From Schmidtea polychroa (Eukaryota): DNA of 64,000 bases. The position numbers and the translations under genes are program-made. Shown piece after piece: positions 1 through 64,000 of this stretch. The stretch is from assembly GCA_044892525.1 (NCBI GenBank), contig CM097886.1, positions 93,062,001 through 93,126,000 of the forward strand, given 5' to 3'. A model generated the notes under the pieces. The model saw only the letters and a program-made list of their open reading frames with translations, had not been told where the DNA came from and did no database searches. Numbering within the stretch: position 1 is the stretch's first letter; the number at the start of each line of letters is the position of its first letter.

Positions 1-2060
1 AATAAGTTAAATAGTTATTATTCCAGTATCTTTAACATTTTTCGTTATATTTTTGTAATCTTTATTAATTTTTAAAAATATTTATTTTTTGATTTGCACT
101 TTATCAATTTAAAAAAAATTAATTAACATAATTTTTACTGAATTCTTTAACATTGAATATTTTCATAATTATTGGGTTTTACCTTAACACTTTTGCTTTA
201 TATTGTTAGATGACAGGGGTCAATAAATCAACGAGTTCGAGTTAACCAAATATTACAGGAACTTCCCGAACAAAAATTAGAGGAACATCTACACGGAGGT
301 CACACAACTTCTATAATTAGTAATTCGCATTCTCAGAAGTCTTCACTTCGTTGCAGTGCGAAATCAATGGACAATTTATTTTGATATACTCTGATATTGA
401 AAATCTATCCATAATTGATTTTACATTGATATTAAATGTGTAATGGACAATTCATTTATTTGTAAATATTTCCTGAACGATTTATTGAGTGACATTGATT
501 GGGGTGTAATTTATTTATTATTTAGTGTTGTAGAATTTTATTCATTGGTGTCTATTATGTTGTTATTTTAATTTCGTGCTACGTAAAATATTAATTACAC
601 AAACTTGGGAAAAATGATAAAAACTAATTAAAATATTTGGAAATAAATTAAATTAAAATTTGAAATATTGAGAATCTAAAAAGATCAATTATGCAATCAA
701 ATTTGAAACACTTAAAAATTAATAAGAAATATCTGTATAATTAAATATCACATTTGAATAGGAAAAACGCCTTATAAAGCAATCATGAAAAATAATAGAA
801 TTATTATAATTAGAAAGCAGCTGTACAATATAAATTGTGATAGCACTAGAAATATAATAAAGTAATCAGGAACAATATAAAAATTATTTTATAAAAAAAC
901 AGCTGTCCTAATTTTTAGATAAATAGCAGCGCAAAATCAGAATTTTTCGCCCAAAAAACTAACAACTCTTTTAATATCTAAGAAGGTGAATCCTCGTTAG
1001 ATTAAAAAATAAGAAGGATACAACAAAAAAGTCTAACTACTGCACGCAACACAGCAAGGATAATATAACATTCACACATACATAATTTGCCTACACAATT
1101 CTATTGCAGTTACTGGAAATTTTGAATCGAATAGCAAGAAATTGATTTAAGTTTTTGGCAAATCTTTTATTGTAAATATATATTTGAAAACAACCGTCTT
1201 TTGTTTATTTCATACTCAGTAGATATATAGGAACCAGTAAAGTTGAGAAAGCAGATAGCGAGTTCTCTACAATACCATTTAAATTTACTTACACTCAATT
1301 TGTGATGCGGCGTACATTGTTTTACTCAATATGTTATTGTTGTGTTGGATGATGAGGGTCTACCTATCACCATATTCATATTAAATAAATATTACAGAAT
1401 AGGGCTTAGAAGTTATAGAATTAACGTGTTTTCCAAAGAAAGACAATAAACTATAGTCCAAATATATATCCAAATCAAACACAATCAAACAATATATTCA
1501 ATTCAAATGCAATCCATTTTATCCTGTATATAATTGATAAAAATTACTTTAACATTCGGTGATTTGGTTATTTTATGTGACTATATTGAATTTAAACTGT
1601 TTCATCCAAGGTGACTATTAATTATTTATCAAAATTGATTCATCCTGTGTATATATTTATTTGACTCTATATTATTTCATTAATTGCGTATTTAAACTAA
1701 ATGTCTTGGGTATTTTATTTGTTGTATAATTGTTCTGGTATGTTAATAACAATAACATTTAACACAAAGGAAAATTATAAAAATTACTATGAAACTTATT
1801 ATATTAATTAAAAATAATATTAATCTATATTAGAAATTTCTTGAAATAAATATCAAGAAATATTATACTACAAAAAATATAATAATAATATTTAATGTAA
1901 ATGAAAGATAATGAGAAAATTGTAATTATTCGACGGGAAATTATATTTGAGTAGGTTGTCAAAATAAATAAATTGCCCAAGCCAATTAAGTCGACAAGGG
2001 GAAGCCCTGAGTGAGAATATCAAAATTAATTTAATGACGAAAGGATGATTATGAGATGGG

Positions 2061-2068
2061 TATAAAAG
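2061..2068 (+). promoter_or_regulatory. TATA box candidate (recurs in every unit)
   Basis: TATAAAAG in a G-rich context (GGGTATAAAAGG). It starts 33 nt before the hairpin at 2094 and ~180 nt before the ATG at 2240. Confidence 0.35.
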
Positions 2069-2093
2069 GTGCTATTTCGGCCTGTTTTGGGCT

Positions 2094-2157
2094 TGCGCCT
2101 ATGTGTGCGTTTATTGTTAAAAGTTCTTTTTCTTGTATGTGTGCGCACACAGGCGCG
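2094..2157 (+). ncRNA. GC-rich hairpin A, candidate structured RNA or pre-miRNA-like element (recurs in every unit)
   Basis: TGCGCCTATGTGTGCGT pairs with GTGCGCACACAGGCGCG over 17 positions with one A.C mismatch, around an AT-rich loop. A paralog lies at 3051-3114. Confidence 0.3.
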
Positions 2158-2239
2158 AACAGGAGTTTTATTATTTTGGAATTCGAATTTTAGGAATTGT
2201 TATATAATTGTTTTTGTGGTTTGAATTTTTGAATCAAAA

Positions 2240-2566
2240 ATGTCAATTGATGTTTATTTAAAACTTAATATTGAAGATGAAAAAGATCGAATGCTGAAAA
2301 GAAAGTACATCACTGAGTTAATGGAACAAGATGAGAGCAAGTTGTATAATTCTAATGGTTCTGAAGAAACAGATAATGTTTTTAGTGGATAAGAATATCA
2401 ATCACTACTTAAAGAATGTGGTTTGTCACTAGCTCTTGATAATGACATCGGTGATGTTGAGGAATTTGATTCTACTCCATTTGTCAAGTACAAAGCTTTG
2501 ACTAGTAAATCGACAGACATTATTGATGAGTTCTTTGAAAAATCTATTGATGAAAGATTCGAATAA
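2240..2566 (+). pseudogene. Acidic orphan ORF (108 codons) with one in-frame TAA (recurs in every unit)
   Basis: MSIDVYLKLNIEDEKDRMLKRKYITELMEQDESKLYNSNGSEETDNVFSG*EYQSLLKECGLSLALDNDIGDVEEFDSTPFVKYKALTSKSTDIIDEFFEKSIDERFE*. The TAA is at 2390. Protein-like composition; family not recognised. Confidence 0.5.
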
Positions 2567-2589
2567 TCATTCTTTTAATTAGTAGTTCA

Positions 2590-2967
2590 ATGTTTCTGAT
2601 TTTAAAGTTGTAGCTGAATCAAATCTTTTCATTTATCAAATCATTGCAAATATCGAAGAGATTTTATTCACTCTTCAAGCAAACAACACGGAAAACAAAA
2701 CGTTATCATCTGATGATAAAATGACATCATTTTACAACTCAAACATCCAGTATTATAATTGAACCGGGGACCATCTGCAATGATATGTTGCAATTTTATC
2801 AAAAAGAAAAGGGTCTAATGAATATTTAAGTATTTGACGCTGGTATTTAAAAAAATAGTCAAACTCGAGAGCGTATTTTGTTGGCTTATTCCGTTGGAGT
2901 CTTACAAGTGATAGTTGATGTAAGGAAAACTATAATTTATTTTAAAAGAACTAGAAAACAATTCTAA
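2590..2967 (+). pseudogene. Deleted paralog of the FKBP/TPR-like gene at 3343 (recurs in every unit)
   Basis: Aligns to ~3368-3890 (VVAESNLFIYQIIANIEEILFTLQANNTENKTLSSDDKMTSFYNSNIQYYN) with deletions of 133 nt and ~37 nt plus stops. Confidence 0.8.
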
Positions 2968-3050
2968 ATTAATTACCACAAAACATCTGTATCAACCAGT
3001 CAGATGGAAGAATAATTTATCCACCTGTCTGGCTGTCTAATTTATGTCTT

Positions 3051-3114
3051 TGTGCCTGTGTGCACGTTTATTGTTAAGATATTTTATTCTTGTATGTGTG
3101 CGCACATAGGTGCG
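3051..3114 (+). ncRNA. GC-rich hairpin B, paralog of hairpin A (recurs in every unit)
   Basis: TGTGCCTGTGTGCACGT pairs with GTGTGCGCACATAGGTGCG. The arms align without gaps to hairpin A and pairing is retained. Confidence 0.3.
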
Positions 3115-3342
3115 GAGAGGGTTATTTTTATTCTTTTGGAATTAAAATCTCGGAATTAGTTATTCCTAAGCATCGGTGTGCGCGTGATTGTGGAGTTTTT
3201 ATGAAGGCTCACCTAATAATTCAGCTCCACATAATAAAGATAATGTGATTGGTATCAAAACTACTATAAATTCCTCTCGCGTTTGTATATAATTTAGTTA
3301 GTTTTAAATTGCAATTAATATTTCTTACAGTCGAATTCATTA

Positions 3343-3816
3343 ATGTCAGGTGAAAAGAATTTTTAATATGTTTCTGATTTTAAAGTTGTAGCCGAATCAG
3401 ATTTTTTCAGTTATAAAATTATTCCAAATATTGAAGAGATTTTATTCACCCTTCAAATAAACAACACGGAAAACAAAATGTTATCATCTGATGATAACAT
3501 GACATCATTTTACAACTCAAACATCCAGTTTTATAATTGTATAAAAGAAAAGAGAATCATCACCACAGATATATTATGTGCTATGCAGTTAGAGACTGGT
3601 GACGAGGAGAAAATTCGATTGGGTCATGTTGTGAAATTATATTTGAATATGGCTCGATGTAATTTGAAATTAAACCGGGGACCATCTGCATTCAAATGTT
3701 GCAATACGATGCTTGATAAGCAGCCAGTGAATGCAAAATCTATTTATCGAAAATCAAATGGTCTGATGATTATTGGAGAATTTGAAGCTGGTATTAAAAA
3801 ATTGTCAAACTCGTGA
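3343..3816 (+). CDS. TPR-domain protein, FKBP-type co-chaperone-like (possibly FKBP6/Shutdown-like), probably truncated; unit 1
   Basis: ORF 3478-3816 contains KLYLNMARCNLKLNRGPSAFKCCNTMLDKQPVNAKSIYRKSNGLMIIGEFEAG, matching the TPR2-TPR3 pattern of immunophilins (LNLAACxLKL...A...C...L...NxKALYR). The frame is open back to 3367. An ATG at 3343 joins it if a 36-nt GT-AG intron (3350-3385) removes the TAA at 3364. Confidence 0.55.
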
Positions 3817-4137
3817 ACATGCTTAGTTGGCTAATACAGTTGGAGTCAAGCATATGATAGTTGACATAAATAAATCCATGATTCTTACTTTAATTAGATT
3901 TGATTTGTTCAACATCGATAAAATGTATTCCAACTTTATTGAAGCCAGTCGTTAAAAATTTAGAATTAATAAAAAATTATTGTAGTTTTTTATAATAAAT
4001 TTAAAAAATCTATCAATTGACATGATTTAGCACAAAATTCATCATCATTATTTAAAAGTAGAAACACATAATATATTTAAATTTATTTATCAACTTATTG
4101 TTTTTTTTAAAATGAAGTTTGTTTAAATATTCAATTC

Positions 4138-4688
4138 TCTGTCGATGTTGAACTTAAATTTGTTGTCAGATCCTTTGAATTAAAAAATTCTAATCCTGTA
4201 AAAAATGAGCGAAATTTAGAGTTAGAATTTAAATTTAGATGGTCTCAATGAAAGATTAGATGAATCATCTGAAGATTAACCAGCCGTACAAGACTCAGAA
4301 AATTTTTTTTCCAACACCTAAAAAATTTAGCCTTCAAAATTCGAGAATCAAAAATCGAAATAAACGAAATGTAAATTTACAATTAAGGATAATAACGAAA
4401 TCAAACTGGAGGATGCATATGAAGATAAAGGTGCGAAACTAGTGCGACCTGATAAATAGAAAACCGAATACGACTGTTTTAGAGTCATTATAGAAATGCC
4501 AGATGAGTAAAAAAGACGTATTAAACGTTTTATCGAATAAGAGATATCCATTTGGCGTGAAGGAAGATGATTGTTATTGTTATTCACCGGAATTAATTGT
4601 AATGAACATATTGCTATGTGAATGTTCAATGGCAGAATCAACAGCTTGGCTATCGCTTAAATCAGAACTTACGTATATAACCATGTAA
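4138..4688 (+). pseudogene. Degraded coding remnant upstream of the NOP14-like ORF, probably the same gene (recurs in every unit)
   Basis: Frame-hopping protein-like text: LDGLNERLDESSED*PAVQDSE / LKNLAFKIRESKIEINEM / IKLEDAYEDKGAKLVRPDK*KTEYDCFRVIIEMPDE*KRRIKRFIE*EISIWR. AYED...RPDK*KTE loosely recalls the Nop14 YD...P(T/S)xRxKTEEE motif. Confidence 0.4.
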
Positions 4689-4799
4689 TTAATTAGTTCA
4701 TTATAATTTATTATATAATTAATCAAATAAATTGGATTATTTTTTAATCATTTATAATTAAATTAATTAGTCAATAAAAATAATTCCAGTGATAAAATA

Positions 4800-5126
4800 A
4801 TGAGAATTTCTGACAGTCAAAATAGCGAGAAATCCATTGATGCTATTTCTATGCTGTATCACATTTTATATCCGATTTTGAGAATGAGGAAAAATATGAA
4901 AATAGTGGAACTACTGGAACCGGATATCAAGGACGATTTTGATCGATCTAAGAATATTACAAAATCTTTGAAAAACAATATCAAAAAGGAAAGGAAATCG
5001 AATCAAAGGATAATGAAGTTGAATGTCAAGGAGGCATTTGTGATAGAAGTGGAAGAAGATAGGAAATTTTCGAAATTCAGAAATGAGAAAACAAAGGAAA
5101 TATTGAATTCTATCAGGCAGAAATAA
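4800..5126 (+). pseudogene. NOP14: NOP14-like C-terminal fragment, unit 1
   Basis: ELLEPDIKDDFD...SLKNNIKKERKSNQR...KTKEILNSIRQK resembles the Nop14/Utp2 C-terminus (yeast PKYEENF...MKAQLKKERK; human KRKVKQLFNSL). It is 108 aa against a ~800-aa parent and ends before the conserved QEG motif. Recognised from memory. Confidence 0.55.
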
Positions 5127-5467
5127 ATATTTGTTTTTTCCTTCTTGGCAATTTATTATTTGTGTTGAGAATTTTTATTTAAACATATAAACTACTAATA
5201 TTTTAATAAGTAGCCAAGTCAGGTGTTTTTTATTTGGCTTTTATTTTGGGGGCAGCAAGTGTATTTTGTGTTTCAATAAATTGCTAACGTAGAATTATAT
5301 TATCCTGCCACTTTCAGAATGCATGGATAACGCGAGCTTGGTAAATTGTTTTGTTGTTTTAATATTTAGGATCGAAAATGGGATGTAATTGCCCGATTTA
5401 GATCAAATTCCCAGTTAGCCGATGGGAATTAGAAACGGATCAAGTAGAGGTTAGCAAAATGAAATAA

Positions 5468-5628
5468 ACGAGCTTTGAGAATAACTTCTAAATCAACTTA
5501 GGGTTCCAGACGTGGAGGTTTCATATTAGGCCTTAATGTTAATTAAATGGATTTCGGAAATAAAAGTGCAAATATTGTGATGATTTGTAAATTGAATTGA
5601 GTATCAGGATTGATGATGAAATGTGCAT
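5468..5628 (+). repeat. 161-bp internal direct repeat R1 (recurs in every unit)
   Basis: Gapless match to 6757-6917 with 21 mismatches by hand count (~87% identity). Confidence 0.92.
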
Positions 5629-5752
5629 GAACGGGGAGGTGCTTTGTTTGTGATGAGCTGCAGATTTGTGATTTGGACGCCTTATATTCGATAAGCATCA
5701 ATAGTGGTGCTTGTTTATATGCCGTTGGACTAAGATTTTCTAAGAACTAAAA

Positions 5753-5800
5753 GATTACATATTAAGCCTTTATGTTAATTAAATGGATTTCTGAAATAAA
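5753..5800 (+). repeat. 48-bp third partial copy R3 of the internal repeat, ending 22 nt before the Ran ATG
   Basis: GATTACATATTAAGCCTTTATGTTAATTAAATGGATTTCTGAAATAAA matches 6806-6853 at 45/48. Confidence 0.88.
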
Positions 5801-5822
5801 TAAAGCTAAACTATTTTGAAAA

Positions 5823-6352
5823 ATGTCCGGTGATGTCGTAGCTCAGTTCAAACTGGTATTAATTGGTGAGGGGAAACAGGCAAAACTGCTTTTTTAAAAA
5901 ATACGTTACAGGAGAGTTTGGTAAGAAATATGGCGCAACATTGGGAGTGGAATTTCATTCTTTGGAGTTCAATAGAACTCGTGGTAAAATTCGTTTCAAT
6001 GCCTGGGATACGGCCGGCTAAGAAAAGTTCTTAGAGATTTCTACTATATTCAATGTTAATGTGCTATAATAATGTTTGATGTAACTAGTCGTATTACATA
6101 TAAAAATGATCAAACTGGCACCGAGATTTAGTTAGGGTATGTGAAAACATCCCTATTATCTTTGTAGGGAATAAGGTGGATATTAAAGATAGACTAAAAC
6201 AATTACCTTTCTGAGTAATAAGAATTTACAATATTAAGAATCACATGCTAAGTCTAATTATAAATTGGAAAAACAATTTTTGTGGATTGGTTGGGGATTC
6301 AAATCTCGAATTTTCTGAAATGCTTACAATAGCTCCTCTTCATAATTCATAA
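5823..6352 (+). pseudogene. RAN: Ran GTPase pseudogene (intronless, frameshifted, nonsense), unit 1
   Basis: Across frames: [164 protein letters not shown]. This is unmistakably Ran, with 6 frameshifting deletions, 3 internal stops and no acidic tail. Confidence 0.95.
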
Positions 6353-6360
6353 TTAGTCTG

Positions 6361-6754
6361 GTTTTCTCTTTACCTTGGCATTCAATGTTAACGACTCAGA
6401 TCTTTTCATTACTACCCGGATGAAAAGACCCACATTTTCGCCTACTTCTCAGTTTTCTTTTCACCATTTTTGTCTGGAACGTCGGTACGAGTTCTTTCTT
6501 CCATCTTTCTCAAATACGGTTCACAATTTCTAAAATTATTTTCCATCTTCGGTCATCTATACCTTCATTAGGTGTGATATCTTCTGTTCGCTCTAGTCCA
6601 GGCCAATTTTATAGAATAAAGTCATTTGGAGTTCGTCCAGTGTCATTTCAAAGTCGCTGCACTGGCAAAGGACGAGAATTCACCCTTCAACTTTTAATAA
6701 CACCGTATTCAGGTACTCATCCGTAATATCAGCCCCTCCAATATTTATTTTCAT
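6361..6754 (-). pseudogene. Degenerate EF-hand/calmodulin-like remnant (recurs in every unit)
   Basis: Minus frame from the ATG at 6754: MKINIGGADITDEYLNTVLLKVEG*ILVLCQCSDFEMTLDELQMTLFYKIGLD*SEQKISHLMKV*MTEDGK*F*KL*TVFEKDGRK.... Segments TLDEL...KIGLDxSEQxI..LMK...EDGK and TVFEKDG recall the calmodulin pattern ITTKEL..LGQNPTEAEL..DGNG and RVFDKDG. Eight stops. Confidence 0.35.
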
Positions 6755-6756
6755 AG

Positions 6757-6917
6757 ACGAGCTCTGACTATAAACTCTAAATCAACTTAGCGTTCAAGAA
6801 AGGGCGATTACATATTAGGCCTTTAAGTTAATTAAATAGATTTCTGAAATAAAAGTGCAAATATTGTGATGATTTGTCAATTAAATTGAGCATCTGGATT
6901 GATGATGAAATGTGCAT
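6757..6917 (+). repeat. 161-bp internal direct repeat R2 (recurs in every unit)
   Basis: Gapless match to 5468-5628 at offset 1,289. Confidence 0.92.
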
Positions 6918-7298
6918 AGATGAATAGAAAATACCTCGATTGAGTTATAACAGAAAGCAAGATAGACCTAGTACAGCTTTTGAGATTCAGGAGTTAATGT
7001 AATGGCAGCAATAGTAGATAACTTAGTAAATATGAAAATTATTAAAATGTTAAGATAGGAAATTGGAGACAATTGTCTACTACTAACACTACATTATAAC
7101 CCACCCAATGTGCGAATCCACTACAACCAATACTGAAATATAATACTAGGACTAACGACACCTTCTACTATTACTTAAAAAATTATTATAACTAGTTTTC
7201 GTATGTTTTTAGAATAAACGGTTTAACTTGTAACGCGCTATTCAAATAGATAATTTTCTTTAGACACCTTTTTTGTTATAAATATCAGTTTGTTCGAA

Positions 7299-7571
7299 AT
7301 GTTTTTGTGTTTTCCTTATGTACTTTGCGTCGCATGTTGCGCACATGATTCGATATACAATTTTTTGAGAAGGAAAAACATTTGGTAGATTAGTAGCATT
7401 GACAATCTCGATGAAATAGATCTGATGTTAGAGATTTCCGAAGTTGTGATTTCAAAGGTGAATTTTCTGGATCACAGACAAATACATACAATTGACAAAA
7501 CTCAATTATATAATGGTAAATTAATTAAAAATATTATTGAAATGTTGTTGGATTTTAAAAATTTGAATTGA
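7299..7571 (+). pseudogene. Orphan 90-codon frame with one in-frame TAG (recurs in every unit)
   Basis: MFLCFPYVLCVACCAHDSIYNFLRRKNIW*ISSIDNLDEIDLMLEISEVVISKVNFLDHRQIHTIDKTQLYNGKLIKNIIEMLLDFKNLN*. The TAG is at 7386; family not recognised. Confidence 0.35.
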
Positions 7572-10500
7572 CAAAACAGATTTTTATGATTTTTAGCAAA
7601 ATTATATTTTAAAAAGTAAATGAATTAGTTTGTTTAAAAAAGAGCAATTTAGATTGATTTAGCTTGAATTTCAATCCTACCTAACGGTGACAGTGAACCT
7701 GTCGAAAAATTCGACTATCAATAACAATTTGTAACTCCAAAGTTTACTATAATTTTTATTTGTTTCTTTAAAAAATATTTATTTAATATTTCGCCTAAAT
7801 TTAAAATACTTTCAATAATTGGTTTTTTAATTAATTAACGCCTCTTGGAGAAAATTTTTAAGTTTTCGTTTTAATAATTTTATTGGAATGCGTAGGAAAT
7901 AAGTTAAATAGTTATTATTCCAGTATCTTTAACATTTTTCGTTATATTTTTGTAATCTTTATTAATTTTTAAAAATATTTATTTTTTGATTTGCACTTTA
8001 TCAATTTAAAAAAAATTAATTAACATAATTTTTACTGAATTCTTTAACATTGAATATTTTCATAATTATTGGGTTTTACCTAAACACTTTTGCTTTATAT
8101 TGTTAGATGACAGGGGTCAATAAATCAACGAGTTCGAGTTAACCAAATATTACAGGAACTTCCCGAACAAAAATTAGAGGAACATCTACACGGAGGTCAC
8201 ACAACTTCTATAATTAGTAATTCGCATTCTCAGAAGTCTTCACTTCGTTGCAGTGCGAAATCAATGGACAATTTATTTTGATATACTCTGATATTGAAAA
8301 TCTATCCATAATTGATTTTACATTGATATTAAATGTGTAATGGACAATTCATTTATTTGTAAATATTTCCTGAACGATTTATTGAGTGACATTGATTGGG
8401 GTGTAATTTATTTATTATTTAGTGTTGTAGAATTTTATTCATTGGTGTCTATTATGTTGTTATTTTAATTTCGTGCTACGTAAAATATTAATTACACAAA
8501 CTTGGGAAAAATGATAAAAACTAATTAAAATATTTGGAAATAAATTAAATTAAAATTTGAAATATTGAGAATCTAAAAAGATCAATTATGCAATCAAATT
8601 TGAAACACTTAAAAATTAATAAGAAATATCTGTATAATTAAATATCACATTTGAATAGGAAAAACGCCTTATAAAGCAATCATGAAAAATAATAGAATTA
8701 TTATAATTAGAAAGCAGCTGTACAATATAAATTGTGATAGCACTAGAAATATAATAAAGTAATCAGGAACAATATAAAAATTATTTTATAAAAAAACAGC
8801 TGTCCTAATTTTTAGATAAATAGCAGCGCAAAATCAGAATTTTTCGCCCAAAAAGCTAACAACTCTTTTAATATCTAAGAAGGTGAATCCTCGTTAGATT
8901 AAAAAATAAGAAGGATACAACAAAAAAGTCTAACTACTGCACGCAACACAGCAAGGATAATATAACATTCACACATACATAATTTGCCTACACAATTCTA
9001 TTGCAGTTACTGGAAATTTTGAATCGAATAGCAAGAAATTGATTTAAGTTTTTGGCAAATCTTTTATTGTAAATATATATTTGAAAACAACCGTCTTTTG
9101 TTTATTTCATACTCAGTAGATATATAGGAACCAGTAAAGTTGAGAAAGCAGATAACGAGTTCTCTACAATACCATTTAAATTTACTTACACTCAATTTGT
9201 GATGCGGCGTACATTGTTTTACTCAATATGTTATTGTTGTGTTGGATGATGAGGGTCTACCTATCACCATATTCATATTAAATAAATATTACAGAATAGG
9301 GCTTAGAAGTTATAGAATTAACGTGTTTTCCAAAGAAAGACAATAAACTATAGTCCAAATATATATCCAAATCAAACACAATCAAACAATATATTCAATT
9401 CAAATGCAATCCATTTTATCCTGTATATAATTGATAAAAATTACTTTAACATTCGGTGATTTGGTTATTTTATGTGACTATATTGAATTTAAACTGTTTC
9501 ATCCAAGGTGACTATTAATTATTTATCAAAATTGATTCATCCTGTGTATATATTTATTTGACTCTATATTATTTCATTAATTGCGTATTTAAACTAAATG
9601 TCTTGGGTATTTTATTTGTTGTATAATTGTTCTGGTATGTTAATAACAATAACATTTAACACAAAGGAAAATTATAAAAATTACTATGAAACTTATTATA
9701 TTAATTAAAAATAATATTAATCTATATTAGAAATTTCTTGAAATAAATATCAAGAAATATTATACTACAAAAAATATAATAATAATATTTAATGTAAATG
9801 AAAGATAATGAGAAAATTGTAATTATTCGACGGGAAATTATATTTGAGTAGGTTGTCAAAATAAATAAATTGCCCAAGCCAATTAAGTCGACAAGGGGAA
9901 GCCCTGAGTGAGAATATCAAAATTAATTTAATGACGAAAGGATGATTATGAGATGGGTATAAAAGGTGCTATTTCGGCCTGTTTTGGGCTTGCGCCTATG
10001 TGTGCGTTTATTGTTAAAAGTTCTTTTTCTTGTATGTGTGCGCACACAGGCGCGAACAGGAGTTTTATTATTTTGGAATTCGAATTTTAGGAATTGTTAT
10101 ATAATTGTTTTTGTGGTTTGAATTTTTGAATCAAAAATGTCAATTGATGTTTATTTAAAACTTAATATTGAAGATGAAAAAGATCGAATGCTGAAAAGAA
10201 AGTACATCACTGAGTTAATGGAACAAGATGAGAGCAAGTTGTATAATTCTAATGGTTCTGAAGAAACAGATAATGTTTTTAGTGGATAAGAATATCAATC
10301 ACTACTTAAAGAATGTGGTTTGTCACTAGCTCTTGATAATGACATCGGTGATGTTGAGGAATTTGATTCTACTCCATTTGTCAAGTACAAAGCTTTGACT
10401 AGTAAATCGACAGACATTATTGATGAGTTCTTTGAAAAATCTATTGATGAAAGATTCGAATAATCATTCTTTTAATTAGTAGTTCAATGTTTCTGATTTT

Positions 10501-11239
10501 AAAGTTGTAGCTGAATCAAATCTTTTCATTTATCAAATCATTGCAAATATCGAAGAGATTTTATTCACTCTTCAAGCAAACAACACGGAAAACAAAACGT
10601 TATCATCTGATGATAAAATGACATCATTTTACAACTCAAACATCCAGTATTATAATTGAACCGGGGACCATCTGCAATGATATGTTGCAATTTTATCAAA
10701 AAGAAAAGGGTCTAATGAATATTTAAGTATTTGACGCTGGTATTAAAAAAAATAGTCAAACTCGAGAGCGTATTTTGTTGGCTTATTCCGTTGGAGTCTT
10801 ACAAGTGATAGTTGATGTAAGGAAAACTATAATTTATTTTAAAAGAACTAGAAAACAATTCTAAATTAATTACCACAAAACATCTGTATCAACCAGTCAG
10901 ATGGAAGAATAATTTATCCACCTGTCTGGCTGTCTAATTTATGTCTTTGTGCCTGTGTGCACGTTTATTGTTAAGATATTTTATTCTTGTATGTGTGCGC
11001 ACATAGGTGCGGAGAGGGTTATTTTTATTCTTTTGGAATTAAAATCTCGGAATTAGTTATTCCTAAGCATCGGTGTGCGCGTGATTGTGGAGTTTTTATG
11101 AAGGCTCACCTAATAATTCAGCTCCACATAATAAAGATAATGTGATTGGTATCAAAACTACTATAAATTCCTCTCGCGTTTGTATATAATTTAGTTAGTT
11201 TTAAATTGCAATTAATATTTCTTACAGTCGAATTCATTA

Positions 11240-53204: not shown

Positions 53205-53734
53205 ATGTCCGGTGATGTCGTAGCTCAGTTCAAACTGGTATTAATTGGTGAGGGGAAACAGGCAAAACTGCTTTTTTAAAAAATACGTTACAGGAGAGTT
53301 TGGTAAGAAATATGGCGCAACATTGGGAGTGGAATTTCATTCTTTGGAGTTCAATAGAACTCGTGGTAAAATTCGTTTCAATGCCTGGGATACGGCCGGC
53401 TAAGAAAAGTTCTTAGAGATTTCTACTATATTCAATGTTAATGTGCTATAATAATGTTTGATGTAACTAGTCGTATTACATATAAAAATGATCAAACTGG
53501 CACCGAGATTTAGTTAGGGTATGTGAAAACATCCCTATTATCTTTGTAGGGAATAAGGTGGATATTAAAGATAGACTAAAACAATTACCTTTCTGAGTAA
53601 TAAGAATTTACAATATTAAGAATCACATGCTAAGTCTAATTATAAATTGGAAAAACAATTTTTGTGGATTGGTTGGGGATTCAAATCTCGAATTTTCTGA
53701 AATGCTTACAATAGCTCCTCTTCATAATTCATAA
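53205..53734 (+). pseudogene. RAN: Ran pseudogene, unit 7
   Basis: Copy of 5823-6352. Confidence 0.95.
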
Positions 53735-56700
53735 TTAGTCTGGTTTTCTCTTTACCTTGGCATTCAATGTTAACGACTCAGATCTTTTCATTACTACCCG
53801 GATGAAAAGACCCACATTTTCGCCTACTTCTCAGTTTTCTTTTCACCATTTTTGTCTGGAACGTCGGTACGAGTTCTTTCTTCCATCTTTCTCAAATACG
53901 GTTCACAATTTCTAAAATTATTTTCCATCTTCGGTCATCTATACCTTCATTAGGTGTGATATCTTCTGTTCGCTCTAGTCCAGGCCAATTTTATAGAATA
54001 AAGTCATTTGGAGTTCGTCCAGTGTCATTTCAAAGTCGCTGCACTGGCAAAGGACGAGAATTCACCCTTCAACTTTTAATAACACCGTATTCAGGTACTC
54101 ATCCGTAATATCAGCCCCTCCAATATTTATTTTCATAGACGAGCTCTGACTATAAACTCTAAATCAACTTAGCGTTCAAGAAAGGGCGATTACATATTAG
54201 GCCTTTAAGTTAATTAAATAGATTTCTGAAATAAAAGTGCAAATATTGTGATGATTTGTCAATTAAATTGAGCATCTGGATTGATGATGAAATGTGCATA
54301 GATGAATAGAAAATACCTCGATTGAGTTATAACAGAAAGCAAGATAGACCTAGTACAGCTTTTGAGATTCAGGAGTTAATGTAATGGCAGCAATAGTAGA
54401 TAACTTAGTAAATATGAAAATTATTAAAATGTTAAGATAGGAAATTGGAGACAATTGTCTACTACTAACACTACATTATAACCCACCCAATGTGCGAATC
54501 CACTACAACCAATACTGAAATATAATACTAGGACTAACGACACCTTCTACTATTACTTAAAAAATTATTATAACTAGTTTTCGTATGTTTTTAGAATAAA
54601 CGGTTTAACTTGTAACGCGCTATTCAAATAGATAATTTTCTTTAGACACCTTTTTTGTTATAAATATCAGTTTGTTCGAAATGTTTTTGTGTTTTCCTTA
54701 TGTACTTTGCGTCGCATGTTGCGCACATGATTCGATATACAATTTTTTGAGAAGGAAAAACATTTGGTAGATTAGTAGCATTGACAATCTCGATGAAATA
54801 GATCTGATGTTAGAGATTTCCGAAGTTGTGATTTCAAAGGTGAATTTTCTGGATCACAGACAAATACATACAATTGACAAAACTCAATTATATAATGGTA
54901 AATTAATTAAAAATATTATTGAAATGTTGTTGGATTTTAAAAATTTGAATTGACAAAACAGATTTTTATGATTTTTAGCAAAATTATATTTTAAAAAGTA
55001 AATGAATTAGTTTGTTTAAAAAAGAGCAATTTAGATTGATTTAGCTTGAATTTCAATCCTACCTAACGGTGACAGTGAACCTGTCGAAAAATTCGACTAT
55101 CAATAACAATTTGTAACTCCAAAGTTTACTATAATTTTTATTTGTTTCTTTAAAAAATATTTATTTAATATTTCGCCTAAATTTAAAATACTTTCAATAA
55201 TTGGTTTTTTAATTAATTAACGCCTCTTGGAGAAAATTTTTAAGTTTTCGTTTTAATAATTTTATTGGAATGCGTAGGAAATAAGTTAAATAGTTATTAT
55301 TCCAGTATCTTTAACATTTTTCGTTATATTTTTGTAATCTTTATTAATTTTTAAAAATATTTATTTTTTGATTTGCACTTTATCAATTTAAAAAAAATTA
55401 ATTAACATAATTTTTACTGAATTCTTTAACATTGAATATTTTCATAATTATTGGGTTTTACCTAAACACTTTTGCTTTATATTGTTAGATGACAGGGGTC
55501 AATAAATCAACGAGTTCGAGTTAACCAAATATTACAGGAACTTCCCGAACAAAAATTAGAGGAACATCTACACGGAGGTCACACAACTTCTATAATTAGT
55601 AATTCGCATTCTCAGAAGTCTTCACTTCGTTGCAGTGCGAAATCAATGGACAATTTATTTTGATATACTCTGATATTGAAAATCTATCCATAATTGATTT
55701 TACATTGATATTAAATGTGTAATGGACAATTCATTTATTTGTAAATATTTCCTGAACGATTTATTGAGTGACATTGATTGGGGTGTAATTTATTTATTAT
55801 TTAGTGTTGTAGAATTTTATTCATTGGTGTCTATTATGTTGTTATTTTAATTTCGTGCTACGTAAAATATTAATTACACAAACTTGGGAAAAATGATAAA
55901 AACTAATTAAAATATTTGGAAATAAATTAAATTAAAATTTGAAATATTGAGAATCTAAAAAGATCAATTATGCAATCAAATTTGAAACACTTAAAAATTA
56001 ATAAGAAATATCTGTATAATTAAATATCACATTTGAATAGGAAAAACGCCTTATAAAGCAATCATGAAAAATAATAGAATTATTATAATTAGAAAGCAGC
56101 TGTACAATATAAATTGTGATAGCACTAGAAATATAATAAAGTAATCAGGAACAATATAAAAATTATTTTATAAAAAAACAGCTGTCCTAATTTTTAGATA
56201 AATAGCAGCGCAAAATCAGAATTTTTCGCCCAAAAAGCTAACAACTCTTTTAATATCTAAGAAGGTGAATCCTCGTTAGATTAAAAAATAAGAAGGATAC
56301 AACAAAAAAGTCTAACTACTGCACGCAACACAGCAAGGATAATATAACATTCACACATACATAATTTGCCTACACAATTCTATTGCAGTTACTGGAAATT
56401 TTGAATCGAATAGCAAGAAATTGATTTAAGTTTTTGGCAAATCTTTTATTGTAAATATATATTTGAAAACAACCGTCTTTTGCTTATTTCATACTCAGTA
56501 GATATATAGGAACCAGTAAAGTTGAGAAAGCAGATAACGAGTTCTCTACAATACCATTTAAATTTACTTACACTCAATTTGTGATGCGGCGTACATTGTT
56601 TTACTCAATATGTTATTGTTGTGTTGGATGATGAGGGTCTACCTATCACCATATTCATATTAAATAAATATTACAGAATAGGGCTTAGAAGTTATAGAAT

Positions 56701-58621
56701 TAACGTGTTTTCCAAAGAAAGACAATAAACTATAGTCCAAATATATATCCAAATCAAACACAATCAAACAATATATTCAATTCAAATGCAATCCATTTTA
56801 TCCTGTATATAATTGATAAAAATTACTTTAACATTCGGTGATTTGGTTATTTTATGTGACTATATTGAATTTAAACTGTTTCATCCAAGGTGACTATTAA
56901 TTATTTATCAAAATTGATTCATCCTGTGTATATATTTATTTGACTCTATATTATTTCATTAATTGCGTATTTAAACTAAATGTCTTGGGTATTTTATTTG
57001 TTGTATAATTGTTCTGGTATGTTAATAACAATAACATTTAACACAAAGGAAAATTATAAAAATTACTATGAAACTTATTATATTAATTAAAAATAATATT
57101 AATCTATATTAGAAATTTCTTGAAATAAATATCAAGAAATATTATACTACAAAAAATATAATAATAATATCTAATGTAAATGAAAGATAATGAGAAAATT
57201 GTAATTATTCGACGGGAAATTATATTTGAGTAGGTTGTCAAAATAAATAAATTGCCCAAGCCAATTAAGTCGACAAGGGGAAGCCCTGAGTGAGAATATC
57301 AAAATTAATTTAATGACGAAAGGATGATTATGAGATGGGTATAAAAGGTGCTATTTCGGCCTGTTTTGGGCTTGCGCCTATGTGTGCGTTTATTGTTAAA
57401 AGTTCTTTTTCTTGTATGTGTGCGCACACAGGCGCGAACAGGAGTTTTATTATTTTGGAATTCGAATTTTAGGAATTGTTATATAATTGTTTTTGTGGTT
57501 TGAATTTTTGAATCAAAAATGTCAATTGATGTTTATTTAAAACTTAATATTGAAGATGAAAAAGATCGAATGCTGAAAAGAAAGTACATCACTGAGTTAA
57601 TGGAACAAGATGAGAGCAAGTTGTATAATTCTAATGGTTCTGAAGAAACAGATAATGTTTTTAGTGGATAAGAATATCAATCACTACTTAAAGAATGTGG
57701 TTTGTCACTAGCTCTTGATAATGACATCGGTGATGTTGAGGAATTTGATTCTACTCCATTTGTCAAGTACAAAGCTTTGACTAGTAAATCGACAGACATT
57801 ATTGATGAGTTCTTTGAAAAATCTATTGATGAAAGATTCGAATAATCATTCTTTTAATTAGTAGTTCAATGTTTCTGATTTTAAAGTTGTAGCTGAATCA
57901 AATCTTTTCATTTATCAAATCATTGCAAATATCGAAGAGATTTTATTCACTCTTCAAGCAAACAACACGGAAAACAAAACGTTATCATCTGATGATAAAA
58001 TGACATCATTTTACAACTCAAACATCCAGTATTATAATTGAACCGGGGACCATCTGCAATGATATGTTGCAATTTTATCAAAAAGAAAAGGGTCTAATGA
58101 ATATTTAAGTATTTGACGCTGGTATTTAAAAAAATAGTCAAACTCGAGAGCGTATTTTGTTGGCTTATTCCGTTGGAGTCTTACAAGTGATAGTTGATGT
58201 AAGGAAAACTATAATTTATTTTAAAAGAACTAGAAAACAATTCTAAATTAATTACCACAAAACATCTGTATCAACCAGTCAGATGGAAGAATAATTTATC
58301 CACCTGTCTGGCTGTCTAATTTATGTCTTTGTGCCTGTGTGCACGTTTATTGTTAAGATATTTTATTCTTGTATGTGTGCGCACATAGGTGCGGAGAGGG
58401 TTATTTTTATTCTTTTGGAATTAAAATTTCGGAATTAGTTATGCCTAAGCATCGGTGTGCGCGTGATTGTGGAGTTTTTATGAAGGCTCACCTAATAATT
58501 CAGCTCCACATAATAAAGATAATGTGATTGGTATCAAAACTACTATAAATTCCTCTCGCGTTTGTATATAATTTAGTTAGTTTTAAATTGCAATTAATAT
58601 TTCTTACAGTCGAATTCATTA

Positions 58622-59095
58622 ATGTCAGGTGAAAAGAATTTTTAAGATGTTTCTGATTTTAAAGTTGTAGCCGAATCAGATTTTTTCAGTTATAAAATTA
58701 TTCCAAATATTGAAGAGATTTTATTCACCCTTCAAATAAACAACACGGAAAACAAAATGTTATCATCTGATGATAACATGACATCATTTTACAACTCAAA
58801 CATCCAGTTTTATAATTGTATAAAAGAAAAGAGAATCATCACCACAGATATATTATGTGCTATGCAGTTAGAGACTGGTGACGAGGAGAAAATTCGATTG
58901 GGTCATGTTGTGAAATTATATTTGAATATGGCTCGATGTAATTTGAAATTAAACCGGGGACCATCTGCATTCAAATGTTGCAATACGATGCTTGATAAGC
59001 AGCCAGTGAATGCAAAATCTATTTATCGAAAATCAAATGGTCTGATGATTATTGGAGAATTTGAAGCTGGTATTAAAAAATTGTCAAACTCGTGA
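58622..59095 (+). CDS. TPR-domain FKBP-like protein, unit 8
   Basis: Same translation as unit 1 (ORF 58757-59095). Confidence 0.55.
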
Positions 59096-60078
59096 ACATG
59101 CTTAGTTGGCTAATACAGTTGGAGTCAAGCATATGATAGTTGACATAAATAAATCCATGATTCTTACTTTAATTAGATTTGATTTGTTCAACATCGATAA
59201 AATGTATTCCAACTTTATTGAAGCCAGTCGTTAAAAATTTAGAATTAATAAAAAATTATTGTAGTTTTTTATAATAAATTTAAAAAATCTATCAATTGAC
59301 ATGATTTAGCACAAAATTCATCATCATTATTTAAAAGTAGAAACACATAATATATTTAAATTTATTTATCAACTTATTGTTTTTTTTAAAATGAAGTTTG
59401 TTTAAATATTCAATTCTCTGTCGATGTTGAACTTAAATTTGTTGTCAGATCCTTTGAATTAAAAAATTCTAATCCTGTAAAAAATGAGCGAAATTTAGAG
59501 TTAGAATTTAAATTTAGATGGTCTCAATGAAAGATTAGACGAATCATCCGAAGATTAACCAGCCGTACAAGACTCAGAAAATTTTTTTTCCAACACCTAA
59601 AAAATTTAGCCTTCAAAATTCGAGAATCAAAAATCGAAATAAACGAAATGTAAATTTACAATTAAGGATAATAACGAAATCAAACTGGAGGATGCATATG
59701 AAGATAAAGGTGCGAAACTAGTGCGACCTGATAAATAGAAAACCGAATACGACTGTTTTAGAGTCATTATAGAAATGCCAGATGAGTAAAAAAGACGTAT
59801 TAAACGTTTTATCGAATAAGAGATATCCATTTGGCGTGAAGGAAGATGATTGTTATTGTTATTCACCGGAATTAATTGTAATGAACATATTGCTATGTGA
59901 ATGTTCAATGGCAGAATCAACAGCTTGGCTATCGCTTAAATCAGAACTTACGTATATAACCATGTAATTAATTAGTTCATTATAATTTATTATATAATTA
60001 ATCAAATAAATTGGATTATTTTTTAATCATTTATAATTAAATTAATTAGTCAATAAAAATAATTCCAGTGATAAAATA

Positions 60079-60405
60079 ATGAGAATTTCTGACAGTCAAA
60101 ATAGCGAGAAATCCATTGATGCTATTTCTATGCTGTATCACATTTTATATCCGATTTTGAGAATGAGGAAAAATATGAAAATAGTGGAACTACTGGAACC
60201 GGATATCAAGGACGATTTTGATCGATCTAAGAATATTACAAAATCTTTGAAAAACAATATCAAAAAGGAAAGGAAATCGAATCAAAGGATAATGAAGTTG
60301 AATGTCAAGGAGGCATTTGTGATAGAAGTGGAAGAAGATAGGAAATTTTCGAAATTCAGAAATGAGAAAACAAAGGAAATATTGAATTCTATCAGGCAGA
60401 AATAA
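60079..60405 (+). pseudogene. NOP14: NOP14-like C-terminal fragment, unit 8
   Basis: Copy of 4800-5126. Confidence 0.55.
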
Positions 60406-61101
60406 ATATTTGTTTTTTCCTTCTTGGCAATTTATTATTTGTGTTGAGAATTTTTATTTAAACATATAAACTACTAATATTTTAATAAGTAGCCAAGTCA
60501 GGTGTTTTTTATTTGGCTTTTATTTTGGGGGCAGCAAGTGTATTTTGTGTTTCAATAAATTGCTAACGTAGAATTATATTATCCTGCCACTTCCAGAATG
60601 CATGGATAACGCGAGCTTGGTAAATTGTTTTGTTGTTTTAATATTTAGGATCGAAAATGGGATGTAATTGCCCGATTTAGATCAAATTCCCAGTTAGCCG
60701 ATGGGAATTAGAAACGGATCAAGTAGAGGTTAGCAAAATGAAATAAACGAGCTTTGAGAATAACTTCTAAATCAACTTAGGGTTCCAGACGTGGAGGTTT
60801 CATATTAGGCCTTAATGTTAATTAAATGGATTTCGGAAATAAAAGTGCAAATATTGTGATGATTTGTAAATTGAATTGAGTATCAGGATTGATGATGAAA
60901 TGTGCATGAACGGGGAGGTGCTTTGTTTGTGATGAGCTGCAGATTTGTGATTTGGACGCCTTATATTCGATAAGCATCAATAGTGGTGCTTGTTTATATG
61001 CCGTTGGACTAAGATTTTCTAAGAACTAAAAGATTACATATTAAGCCTTTATGTTAATTAAATGGATTTCTGAAATAAATAAAGCTAAACTATTTTGAAA
61101 A

Positions 61102-61631
61102 ATGTCCGGTGATGTCGTAGCTCAGTTCAAACTGGTATTAATTGGTGAGGGGAAACAGGCAAAACTGCTTTTTTAAAAAATACGTTACAGGAGAGTTTGG
61201 TAAGAAATATGGCGCAACATTGGGAGTGGAATTTCATTCTTTGGAGTTCAATAGAACTCGTGGTAAAATTCGTTTCAATGCCTGGGATACGGCCGGCTAA
61301 GAAAAGTTCTTAGAGATTTCTACTATATTCAATGTTAATGTGCTATAATAATGTTTGATGTAACTAGTCGTATTACATATAAAAATGATCAAACTGGCAC
61401 CGAGATTTAGTTAGGGTATGTGAAAACATCCCTATTATCTTTGTAGGGAATAAGGTGGATATTAAAGATAGACTAAAACAATTACCTTTCTGAGTAATAA
61501 GAATTTACAATATTAAGAATCACATGCTAAGTCTAATTATAAATTGGAAAAACAATTTTTGTGGATTGGTTGGGGATTCAAATCTCGAATTTTCTGAAAT
61601 GCTTACAATAGCTCCTCTTCATAATTCATAA
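61102..61631 (+). pseudogene. RAN: Ran pseudogene, unit 8
   Basis: Copy of 5823-6352. Confidence 0.95.
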
Positions 61632-63176
61632 TTAGTCTGGTTTTCTCTTTACCTTGGCATTCAATGTTAACGACTCAGATCTTTTCATTACTACCCGGAT
61701 GAAAAGACCCACATTTTCGCCTACTTCTCAGTTTTCTTTTCACCATTTTTGTCTGGAACGTCGGTACGAGTTCTTTCTTCCATCTTTCTCAAATACGGTT
61801 CACAATTTCTAAAATTATTTTCCATCTTCGGTCATCTATACCTTCATTAGGTGTGATATCTTCTGTTCGCTCTAGTCCAGGCCAATTTTATAGAATAAAG
61901 TCATTTGGAGTTCGTCCAGTGTCATTTCAAAGTCGCTGCACTGGCAAAGGACGAGAATTCACCCTTCAACTTTTAATAACACCGTATTCAGGTACTCATC
62001 CGTAATATCAGCCCCTCCAATATTTATTTTCATAGACGAGCTCTGACTATAAACTCTAAATCAACTTAGCGTTCAAGAAAGGGCGATTACATATTAGGCC
62101 TTTAAGTTAATTAAATAGATTTCTGAAATAAAAGTGCAAATATTGTGATGATTTGTCAATTAAATTGAGCATCTGGATTGATGATGAAATGTGCATAGAT
62201 GAATAGAAAATACCTCGATTGAGTTATAACAGAAAGCAAGATAGACCTAGTACAGCTTTTGAGATTCAGGAGTTAATGTAATGGCAGCAATAGTAGATAA
62301 CTTAGTAAATATGAAAATTATTAAAATGTTAAGATAGGAAATTGGAGACAATTGTCTACTACTAACACTACATTATAACCCACCCAATGTGCGAATCCAC
62401 TACAACCAATACTGAAATATAATACTAGGACTAACGACACCTTCTACTATTACTTAAAAAATTATTATAACTAGTTTTCGTATGTTTTTAGAATAAACGG
62501 TTTAACTTGTAACGCGCTATTCAAATAGATAATTTTCTTTAGACACCTTTTTTGTTATAAATATCAGTTTGTTCGAAATGTTTTTGTGTTTTCCTTATGT
62601 ACTTTGCGTCGCATGTTGCGCACATGATTCGATATACAATTTTTTGAGAAGGAAAAACATTTGGTAGATTAGTAGCATTGACAATCTCGATGAAATAGAT
62701 CTGATGTTAGAGATTTCCGAAGTTGTGATTTCAAAGGTGAATTTTCTGGATCACAGACAAATACATACAATTGACAAAACTCAATTATATAATGGTAAAT
62801 TAATTAAAAATATTATTGAAATGTTGTTGGATTTTAAAAATTTGAATTGACAAAACAGATTTTTATGATTTTTAGCAAAATTATATTTTAAAAAGTAAAT
62901 GAATTAGTTTGTTTAAAAAAGAGCAATTTAGATTGATTTAGCTTGAATTTCAATCCTACCTAACGGTGACAGTGAACCTGTCGAAAAATTCGACTATCAA
63001 TAACAATTTGTAACTCCAAAGTTTACTATAATTTTTATTTGTTTCTTTAAAAAATATTTATTTAATATTTCGCCTAAATTTAAAATACTTTCAATAATTG
63101 GTTTTTTAATTAATTAACGCCTCTTGGAGAAAATTTTTAAGTTTTCGTTTTAATAATTTTATTGGAATGCGTAGGA

Positions 63177-64000
63177 AATAAGTTAAATAGTTATTATTCC
63201 AGTATCTTTAACATTTTTCGTTATATTTTTGTAATCTTTATTAATTTTTAAAAATATTTATTTTTTGATTTGCACTTTATCAATTTAAAAAAAATTAATT
63301 AACATAATTTTTACTGAATTCTTTAACATTGAATATTTTCATAATTATTGGGTTTTACCTAAACACTTTTGCTTTATATTGTTAGATGACAGGGGTCAAT
63401 AAATCAACGAGTTCGAGTTAACCAAATATTACAGGAACTTCCCGAACAAAAATTAGAGGAACATCTACACGGAGGTCACACAACTTCTATAATTAGTAAT
63501 TCGCATTCTCAGAAGTCTTCACTTCGTTGCAGTGCGAAATCAATGGACAATTTATTTTGATATACTCTGATATTGAAAATCTATCCATAATTGATTTTAC
63601 ATTGATATTAAATGTGTAATGGACAATTCATTTATTTGTAAATATTTCCTGAACGATTTATTGAGTGACATTGATTGGGGTGTAATTTATTTATTATTTA
63701 GTGTTGTAGAATTTTATTCATTGGTGTCTATTATGTTGTTATTTTAATTTCGTGCTACGTAAAATATTAATTACACAAACTTGGGAAAAATGATAAAAAC
63801 TAATTAAAATATTTGGAAATAAATTAAATTAAAATTTGAAATATTGAGAATCTAAAAAGATCAATTATGCAATCAAATTTGAAACACTTAAAAATTAATA
63901 AGAAATATCTGTATAATTAAATATCACATTTGAATAGGAAAAACGCCTTATAAAGCAATCATGAAAAATAATAGAATTATTATAATTAGAAAGCAGCTGT
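63177..64000 (+). repeat. Repeat unit 9 (partial, cut by the window end)
   Basis: Matches unit positions 1-824. Confidence 0.97.

Follow-up and report, generated by a model that had tools for sequence, protein, structure and literature searches.

Gene-derived macrosatellites, such as those of the human D4Z4, RS447, CT47 and DXZ4 type, repeat a multi-kilobase unit of gene-copy origin in strict head-to-tail order, the units being nearly identical. Known small-RNA loci derived from pseudogenes have an anatomy of tandem pseudogenes combined with repeats; among them, the piRNA loci Su(Ste) and AT-chX of Drosophila consist of tandem units in which a degenerate gene copy carries transposon insertions. 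In planarian genomes, rapid structural evolution has been reported (PMC11410931). The locus analysed here, on chromosome 2 (C2) of Schmidtea polychroa, was compared with these systems by determining the extent of its tandem array, the origin of the repeated unit and what the unit encodes.

The window (the whole 64,000-nucleotide stretch analysed) lies inside a single array:

1-64000, plus strand: tandem array, 8.1 units in the window (lag identity and unit alignment)

The period is exactly 7,897 bp, base identity being 0.99934 at lag 7,897 versus 0.30-0.33 at lags 7,890-7,900. Cutting the window every 7,897 bp gave 8 full units plus 824 bp (8.1 copies), and the alignment of these units contained 16 variable columns, all of them substitutions. 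The period, copy count and 16 substitution sites recorded by the first-pass annotation were thus all reproduced. When the flanks were added, the full array was found to span C2:93,061,788-93,134,020 (72,233 bp; 9.15 units), its edges lying 213 bp before the window start and 8,020 bp past the window end. All units stand head to tail in one orientation and are mutually 99.94% identical, with 19 variable sites, 0 indels and 40 mismatches in 64,336 lag comparisons over the whole array, and the 9 full copies comprise 7 distinct haplotypes. A unit longer than 1 kb in repeated head-to-tail order, combined with high identity between units and the signs of exchange described below, places the array among the macrosatellites. 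Tandem Repeats Finder reported nothing on the array because the longest period it handles is 500. The copy number is that of one HiFi assembly, and polishing with multi-mapped reads could be part of the cause of the zero indels over 72 kb of AT-rich array. The sequence is free of Ns for 40 kb upstream and 160 kb downstream, is gapless for 264 kb around the array, and leads into two flanks that are each unique and unlike one another. The array lies 49% along the 189.7-Mb chromosome 2 scaffold, in surroundings (at least 360 kb) dense in segmental duplications, retroelements and gene fragments.

The origin of the unit is indicated by the gene next door. An intact NOP14 gene (C2:93,057,382-93,060,795) lies directly upstream of the array, and the unit, read from position 7707 across the unit boundary to 5426, is collinear with the adjacent stretch C2:93,056,733-93,060,795. 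This stretch bears long NOP14 open reading frames, with a Pfam Nop14 match at positions 699-858 of 862 (E 1.5e-5). A genome search found no other NOP14-like C-terminus outside this region, and the gene with which the unit is collinear is adjacent, intact and otherwise single-copy. The corresponding parts of the unit are as follows:

3911-5426, plus strand: NOP14 pseudogene, collinear with the intact gene (73-93% nucleotide identity)
7707-8099, plus strand: homologue of the NOP14 upstream region, unit 7707-7897 followed by 1-202 (77-82% identical)
Unit 1273-1342 and 2934-2986: further small pieces collinear with the NOP14 locus

The NOP14 relic is disrupted by in-frame stops and frame changes and has lost about 200, 19 and 57 codons in three deletions; only its final 88 codons remain open (4767-5123). 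Its 3′ part is 89-93% identical to the parent, most of the relic 73-85%. The lesions are common to all units, which differ by 19 substitutions only; being present in every unit, they are therefore older than the amplification. On the basis of this collinearity, the unit is judged to be a decayed duplicate of the intact NOP14 locus beside it. The first-pass annotation, made from the letters of the window, had overlooked this origin.

A second dead gene follows the NOP14 relic in the same orientation, which is also that of the parent NOP14 gene:

5823-6336, plus strand: Ran GTPase pseudogene (PDB, Pfam and genome comparison)
5464-5628, plus strand: 165-bp direct repeat, partner at 6753-6917 (87% identity)

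The Ran relic begins with an ATG at 5823 and has a frameshift inside its P-loop; residues 20-68 alone stay in one frame (PDB Ran, E 5e-14; Pfam Ras, E 4.9e-7). Its nearest relative, at C2:92,812,874-92,813,508, shares about 73% nucleotide identity, and the relic is about 120 bp shorter. A PDB search with a supposed Ran C-terminal piece at 6215-6349, assigned by eye only, gave no match. A 48-bp core of the 165-bp repeat recurs at 5752-5800, just 5′ of the ATG of the relic. The proposal that this cargo had decayed long before amplification is borne out for both genes, because the relics (NOP14 73-93%, Ran about 73%) are far more diverged than the 99.94% identical units are from each other.

Much of the remaining unit consists of dispersed repeats:

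201-947, unstranded: dispersed repeat family member; copies on C1, C3 and C4 share 67-82% identity
2072-2761, plus strand: hairpin-headed TPR-like dispersed repeat, copy 1 (hairpin and open reading frame pieces, 3′-truncated)
3050-3915, plus strand: hairpin-headed TPR-like dispersed repeat, copy 2 (hairpin at 3050-3163)
6346-6757, unstranded: dispersed repeat fragments; loci on C1, C2 and C3 share 73-87% identity
7172-7684, unstranded: dispersed repeat fragments (genome comparison)

Copy 1 of the hairpin-headed repeat opens with a GC-rich stem-loop and an Sm-like site (2072-2200), followed by open reading frame pieces at 2225-2389, 2393-2563 and 2586-2759 that are interrupted by one stop and one frameshift. 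Copy 2, whose hairpin is 79% identical to that of copy 1, lacks the N-terminal part of the reading frame and retains a 149-codon open stretch (3367-3813) with a TPR-like end. This stretch has at least 150 matches in the genome, many with stops, and the family as a whole numbers more than 100 copies, mostly decayed. A word-based protein search with the 149-aa piece found no match among proteins of 82-260 aa, a range outside which longer relatives would lie, and a feature search of the ESM Atlas returned only TPR, FKBP and AIP-like leads with scores of 0.79-0.81, below the reliable range. The hairpin module lies directly 3′ of a TATA-like motif, and its predicted fold is more stable than that of shuffled sequence (z -2.6 and -3.5); its hairpin and Sm-like site resemble a spliced-leader (SL) RNA or snRNA in layout only. 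Among the other repeats, the family at 201-947 has a cluster of copies at C4 88-90 Mb, and a 130-bp high-copy element at 7549-7684 shares 86-93% identity with at least 17 loci. Dispersed repeat families contribute roughly 40% of the unit.

The 130-bp element stops exactly at the junction between two segments, designated I and R, into which the unit can be divided:

7685-8844, plus strand: segment R, 1,160 bp, unit 7685-7897 followed by 1-947 (sequence comparison and reading of its ends)

Segment R is composed partly of the NOP14-upstream homologue and partly of dispersed repeat. It is present ten times and the remaining 6,737 bp (I) nine times, so that R stands at both array ends; the leading R is just 98.6% identical to the other R segments. 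An array that begins and ends with the same 1,160-bp segment is like a tandem array of LTR-internal-LTR retrotransposons, in which one more terminal repeat than internal parts is expected, but the count of ten R and nine I is also what any exchange between direct repeats would give. The ends of R, read directly, lack TG...CA termini, and the unit open reading frames submitted to Pfam yielded no reverse transcriptase, integrase or gag domains. A reading of R-I-R as an LTR element was accordingly rejected, since R is without TG...CA ends and the internal part is without gag or pol.

The coding content of the unit was searched more broadly. Pfam was queried with 30 open reading frame pieces (nearly all of the unit open reading frames of at least 45 aa); the sole matches, to Ras and Roc, came from the Ran relic, and no histone or transposon-protein domain was found in these pieces. 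Rfam gave no match over two units at E≤1, and ARAGORN found no tRNA in the unit. A dosage array would have a unit encoding rRNA, 5S, histone, snRNA, SL RNA or tRNA, and no such gene was identified in this one. The array does not appear to encode an intact protein. The earlier statement that the unit is not rDNA, histone or snRNA is consequently supported; that it is not a transposon applies to the whole unit but not to its parts, given their dispersed repeats. Between 25 and 93% of the unit's words occur in sequencing runs of three studies, which shows presence and not copy number. One run, guessed to be RNA, contains 25% of the sampled words, suggesting that part of the unit may be transcribed.

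Relationships among the units and their nearby relatives bear on how the array grew. The two-unit block of array copies 2-3 recurs as copies 4-5, for sites 3149 and 5314 all four gametes are present among the units, and the leftmost copy has ancestral states at 958, 1204 and 1258. Together, these three patterns point to recurrent unequal exchange. Parts of the unit recur 14-360 kb downstream at 97-98% identity; one of these partial copies keeps a TOP2-fragment region, which also stands behind the intact NOP14 gene, and in the copy this region leads into the start of R. These nearby copies are of differing ages and occur in both orientations.

Our preferred explanation, to which we assign a probability of roughly 70%, is that the array is a young, neutral macrosatellite with its origin in a local gene duplication. 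According to this model, a copy that arose long ago by tandem duplication of the NOP14 locus (the gene with its upstream region and downstream DNA) would have lost its function, undergone large deletions, gained two truncated hairpin-headed TPR-like repeats along with other dispersed repeats, and been joined to a segment with a dead Ran copy. These steps of loss, deletion, repeat uptake and joining all appear to be legible in the sequence. The 7.9-kb patchwork would then have grown very recently to nine units beside its intact parent, an expansion that we infer. Tandem paralogues probably drove this growth through repeated rounds of unequal exchange (non-allelic homologous recombination), in surroundings rich in recent segmental duplications. 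The array itself is most likely functionless, and it looks like a member of a familiar class and not a new kind of element.

Several alternative explanations were weighed against this model. The assembler might have created the copy number or structure artificially, for instance by expanding a shorter array or two haplotypes. Units of 7.9 kb that are 99.94% identical approach the resolving limit of 15-20-kb HiFi reads, and the S. polychroa assembly underwent haplotig purging and polishing (PMC11410931). However, the seven haplotypes among nine full copies change in an orderly manner from edge to centre and argue against a collapse to 1-2 copies, the surroundings are gapless with unique and different flanks, and the unit's words recur in the runs of three studies (again as presence, not copy number); we consider an artefact quite unlikely. 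A slightly better, though still low, likelihood is given to the array serving small-RNA production (piRNA or endo-siRNA), as Su(Ste) and AT-chX do, whereby transcripts of the dead genes and repeats would be processed and act on the hairpin-headed TPR family, NOP14 or Ran. The tandem patchwork of pseudogene and repeats, the 89-93% identity of the 3′ part of the NOP14 relic to its parent and the presumed RNA run with a quarter of the unit words are consistent with such a role. Yet over most of its length the NOP14 relic matches its parent at only 73-85% identity, and the Ran relic its relative at 73%, which is too low for efficient targeting; moreover, every relic gene has the orientation of the parent NOP14, nine copies are few for a dedicated cluster, and the extreme youth of the array has left selection little time. 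A newly born regulatory locus, whose piRNAs or siRNAs police the hairpin-headed family or tune NOP14 or Ran, is a shade less probable than an artefact. If true, it would be a planarian counterpart of the Su(Ste)-type arrays caught within its first few unequal exchanges, beside its parent gene.

The array could be kept homogeneous by a role in chromatin or chromosome structure, for instance as a pericentromeric or boundary element, and its location at the 49% point of chromosome 2, amid at least 360 kb dense in duplications, retroelements and gene fragments, would suit such a role. This is nevertheless very unlikely, as 72 kb is small against the candidate centromeric repeats of Schmidtea, which form arrays of more than 1 Mb (PMC11410931), and the unit is found at this locus only. 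Most improbable of all is an array that raises the dosage of a so far undescribed small RNA gene, represented by the module of hairpin and Sm-like site that occurs twice per unit. Its folding relative to shuffled sequence, its position behind a TATA-like motif and its architecture, similar to that of a spliced-leader RNA or snRNA, speak for this explanation; against it, Rfam gave no match, the unit's two copies of the module are just 79% alike, and the module heads a mostly decayed dispersed family of more than 100 copies and is thus not specific to the array.

Taken as a young, neutral macrosatellite, the locus offers a clean and readable case of the birth of a large satellite-like repeat, in which a stretch of less than 400 kb takes in the still intact parent gene, its long-dead duplicate, intermediate copies of parts of the unit and the newly formed array. 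As a single locus the array is ordinary, and it would gain weight only through evidence of small RNAs or of a chromatin role.

Set beside the Drosophila Su(Ste) and AT-chX loci, with which it shares tandem units of a degenerate gene copy and transposon insertions, the array differs in its low identity to the presumed targets, and no antisense arrangement was found in it. It resembles the gene-derived macrosatellites in unit size, order, identity and origin, but here there is no intact open reading frame, there are only about nine copies, and the intact parent gene remains at the array edge. Finally, the juxtaposition of NOP14, TOP2 and Ran fragments, and neighbouring copies of varied age in both orientations, recall the segmental-duplication mosaics of primate pericentromeric and subtelomeric regions, with the difference that here one mosaic block has expanded into a regular tandem array.

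Comparison of the window with itself gave 99.934% identity when it was offset by exactly 7,897 bp, against 30-33% for neighbouring offsets, and cutting it at this length yielded eight full units plus 824 bp, with 16 variable columns that contained substitutions only. The first-pass annotation had reported the same period and the same 16 substitution sites by eye. Once flanks of 40 kb before and 160 kb after the window had been read (264 kb in total), the full array could be placed at C2:93,061,788 to 93,134,020 (C2 being contig CM097886.1); it measures 72,233 bp, equivalent to 9.15 units, and has 19 variable sites and zero indels. Topoisomerase II (TOP2) fragments form the left flank, while the right flank opens with a T run followed by a (TAA)n microsatellite; because the two flanks are unlike each other, the array is bounded. 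The microsatellite spans about 150 bp (L015:8060-8212, L014 to L030 labelling flanking stretches) and begins 40 bp past the array's right end.

The core of the unit is collinear with the stretch directly upstream of the array, C2:93,056,733-93,060,795, which carries a NOP14 gene. The features are listed in unit coordinates (unit position 1 being window position 1) unless marked otherwise.

Features of the unit and of its surroundings
7707-7897/1-202, 1273-1342, 2934-2986 and 3911-5426: NOP14-collinear blocks, 73-93% identical to C2:93,056,733-93,060,795
2072-2761 and 3050-3915: truncated dispersed-repeat members, two per unit, within the two insertions
5823-6336: Ran GTPase pseudogene, beginning at ATG
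L014:5601-8274 (C2:93,057,601-93,060,274): compact, apparently intact NOP14 gene, 1.5 kb before the array
L014 5601-5732, 5740-5877, 5943-6740, 6749-7156 and 7744-8271: long open NOP14 exons
C2:93,147,000-93,286,000 (L017-L030): maze of recent segmental duplications

In Pfam, the last NOP14 exon hits the Nop14 family at its C-terminal end (positions 699-858 of 862, E 1.5e-5); the score is below the cut-off for the whole protein, which is to be expected of a fragment. Since a genome-wide search with this exon returned only the upstream gene and its derived copies in the region, the upstream gene is most likely the functional NOP14. It is also the parent of the array's core. The copy in the unit carries in-frame stops and frame changes; its acidic exon is shorter by about 200 codons, and two more deletions remove 19 and 57 codons. 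Window positions 7948-7991 fall within the AT-rich homologue of the NOP14 upstream region.

Relative to the parent locus the unit has two insertions, at 1343-2933 and 2987-3910. Each of the dispersed-repeat members within them begins with a GC-rich stem-loop, continues with an Sm-like U-rich site and runs on into an ORF, the end of which looks TPR-like (FKBP or AIP type), as judged by eye and from weak Atlas leads. At the protein level this family was matched at least 150 times over all chromosomes, in many cases with stops, and its DNA copies start right after a TATA-like motif. At its head is a hairpin module (window 2061-2200 and 3020-3165), in which the TATA-like motif precedes the long GC-rich stem-loop, followed by the Sm-like U-rich site and another small hairpin; the folds have z-scores of -2.6 and -3.5 versus shuffled sequences. 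Other dispersed repeat families account for unit 201-947 and for several pieces within 6346-7684, one of them a 130-bp high-copy element that ends exactly at 7684. The Ran relic (PDB Ran, E 5e-14; Pfam Ras, E 4.9e-7) has a frameshift in the P-loop and keeps only residues 20-68 in one frame; its nearest relative, at a distance of 250 kb, shares 73% identity and exceeds it in length by about 120 bp. Each unit contains three copies of a 48-bp AT-rich module (window 5516-5564, 5752-5800 and 6806-6853); one is located 23 bp before the relic's ATG, and the outer two extend into 165-bp direct repeats that bracket the relic.

Known classes of repeated sequence were searched for in the unit. A search of two units against Rfam returned no match at E<=1, ARAGORN found no tRNA in the unit, and open stretches reach 149 codons at most. 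A Pfam scan of 30 ORF pieces of at least 45 aa, nearly all such pieces in the unit, detected no reverse transcriptase, integrase, transposase, gag or histone domain, the Ran relic being the only piece with a family match. On these searches, a dosage array of rDNA, histone, snRNA or tRNA genes is rejected. The earlier statement that the unit is not a transposon holds for the whole unit but not for its parts, as dispersed repeats make up roughly 40% of it (estimated by summing intervals). An array of LTR elements with R, a 1,160-bp segment (unit 7685-7897 plus 1-947), as the LTR was also rejected: the ends of R are not TG...CA and the internal part is without retroelement genes.

At 14-360 kb downstream, partial copies of the unit (mostly of 957-5436) occur in both orientations, embedded in the duplication maze, whose duplications are 96-99.8% identical to each other. 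Here, 22.7 kb at 93,168,791 is repeated at 93,254,643 with 99.4% identity, and palindromic pairs of partial units occur around 93,180,000 and 93,266,000. The NOP14 relic is 73-93% identical to its parent, the partial copies are 97-98% identical to the unit, and the array units are 99.94% identical to each other; this ordering bears out the proposal, made from the window alone, that the cargo decayed long before amplification. The partial copy at C2:93,147,663-93,153,271 runs past unit 5426 into the TOP2-fragment region also present after the intact NOP14 and then into the start of R, a layout suggesting that an older tandem unit consisted of R, core and TOP2 fragments. In the array's lineage, segment 5427-7684, carrying the Ran relic, would have taken the place of the TOP2 part. 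In a further copy, at 93.386 Mb, 6620-7684 (97%) is fused to diverged R-like sequence (78%).

The TOP2 fragments between NOP14 and the array (L014:8914-9690; C2:93,060,914-93,061,690) are scrambled in order and match Pfam DNA_topoisoIV (E 1e-23 and 2.5e-12), an additional N-terminal piece being assigned by eye. Several TOP2 copies on C3 have uninterrupted open frames of 981-1,177 aa; a TOP2 gene is expected to have introns, and intron-free frames are unusual. On either side of NOP14 and the array stand inverted repeats, about 5 kb long and diverged (70-87%), at C2:93,046,167-93,051,315 and C2:93,147,524-93,141,125; they include an ORF-A/ORF-B module and a 4-kb element. An ORF of 583-627 aa joining a ubiquitin domain (E 2e-23) to DUF1759, a gag-like domain of BEL/Pao-type retroelements, occurs three times in the duplicated region (L022:4672-6432, L017:9271 and L026:7459).

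There are ten copies of R and nine of the remainder of the unit. The start of R nearly coincides with the start of parent-locus homology, and the intact NOP14 locus and the array therefore constitute one tandem series. Seven haplotypes can be told apart in the nine full copies, copies 4-5 repeat the two-unit block of copies 2-3, and all four allele combinations occur at sites 3149 and 5314. With the 97-98% copies as outgroups, the leftmost copy retains the ancestral state at 958, 1204 and 1258, and the leading R is just 98.6% identical to the other R segments. Because of these patterns, the array probably grew by several rounds of unequal exchange, with homogenisation appearing weaker at the edge. 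A single rolling-circle event does not fit the variant patterns among copies.

The scaffold carrying the window is 189,691,935 bp long. The assembly is almost certainly schPol2 (781.29 Mb, 1,013 contigs, N50 189,691,935 bp), which was made from PacBio HiFi reads with hifiasm, followed by purging of haplotigs, Hi-C scaffolding and polishing (Ivankovic et al, 2024; PMC11410931). That the array is an artefact of assembly is unlikely, given the ordered succession of unit haplotypes and a gap-free contig, with zero N in the 264 kb read. Runs from three S. polychroa studies contain 25-93% of the unit's words, which shows presence, not copy number. We judge the tandem array to be real, well-bounded and very young. 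Nothing in the unit's sequence indicates a function, and we favour a neutral, very young macrosatellite, with a probability of about 0.7. The main rival, by analogy with Su(Ste) and AT-chX, is that the array serves as a source of small RNAs; the anatomy of the unit would suit such a role, and one run, guessed to be RNA, contains 25% of the unit's sampled words. However, the presumed targets are mostly too dissimilar to the unit, and every relic lies in sense orientation, making a small-RNA source improbable.

Among known systems, the hairpin module shares its layout with spliced-leader RNAs and snRNAs. The array as a whole can be classed as a macrosatellite whose unit is gene-derived, and it is similar as well to the mosaics of gene fragments in segmental-duplication regions.
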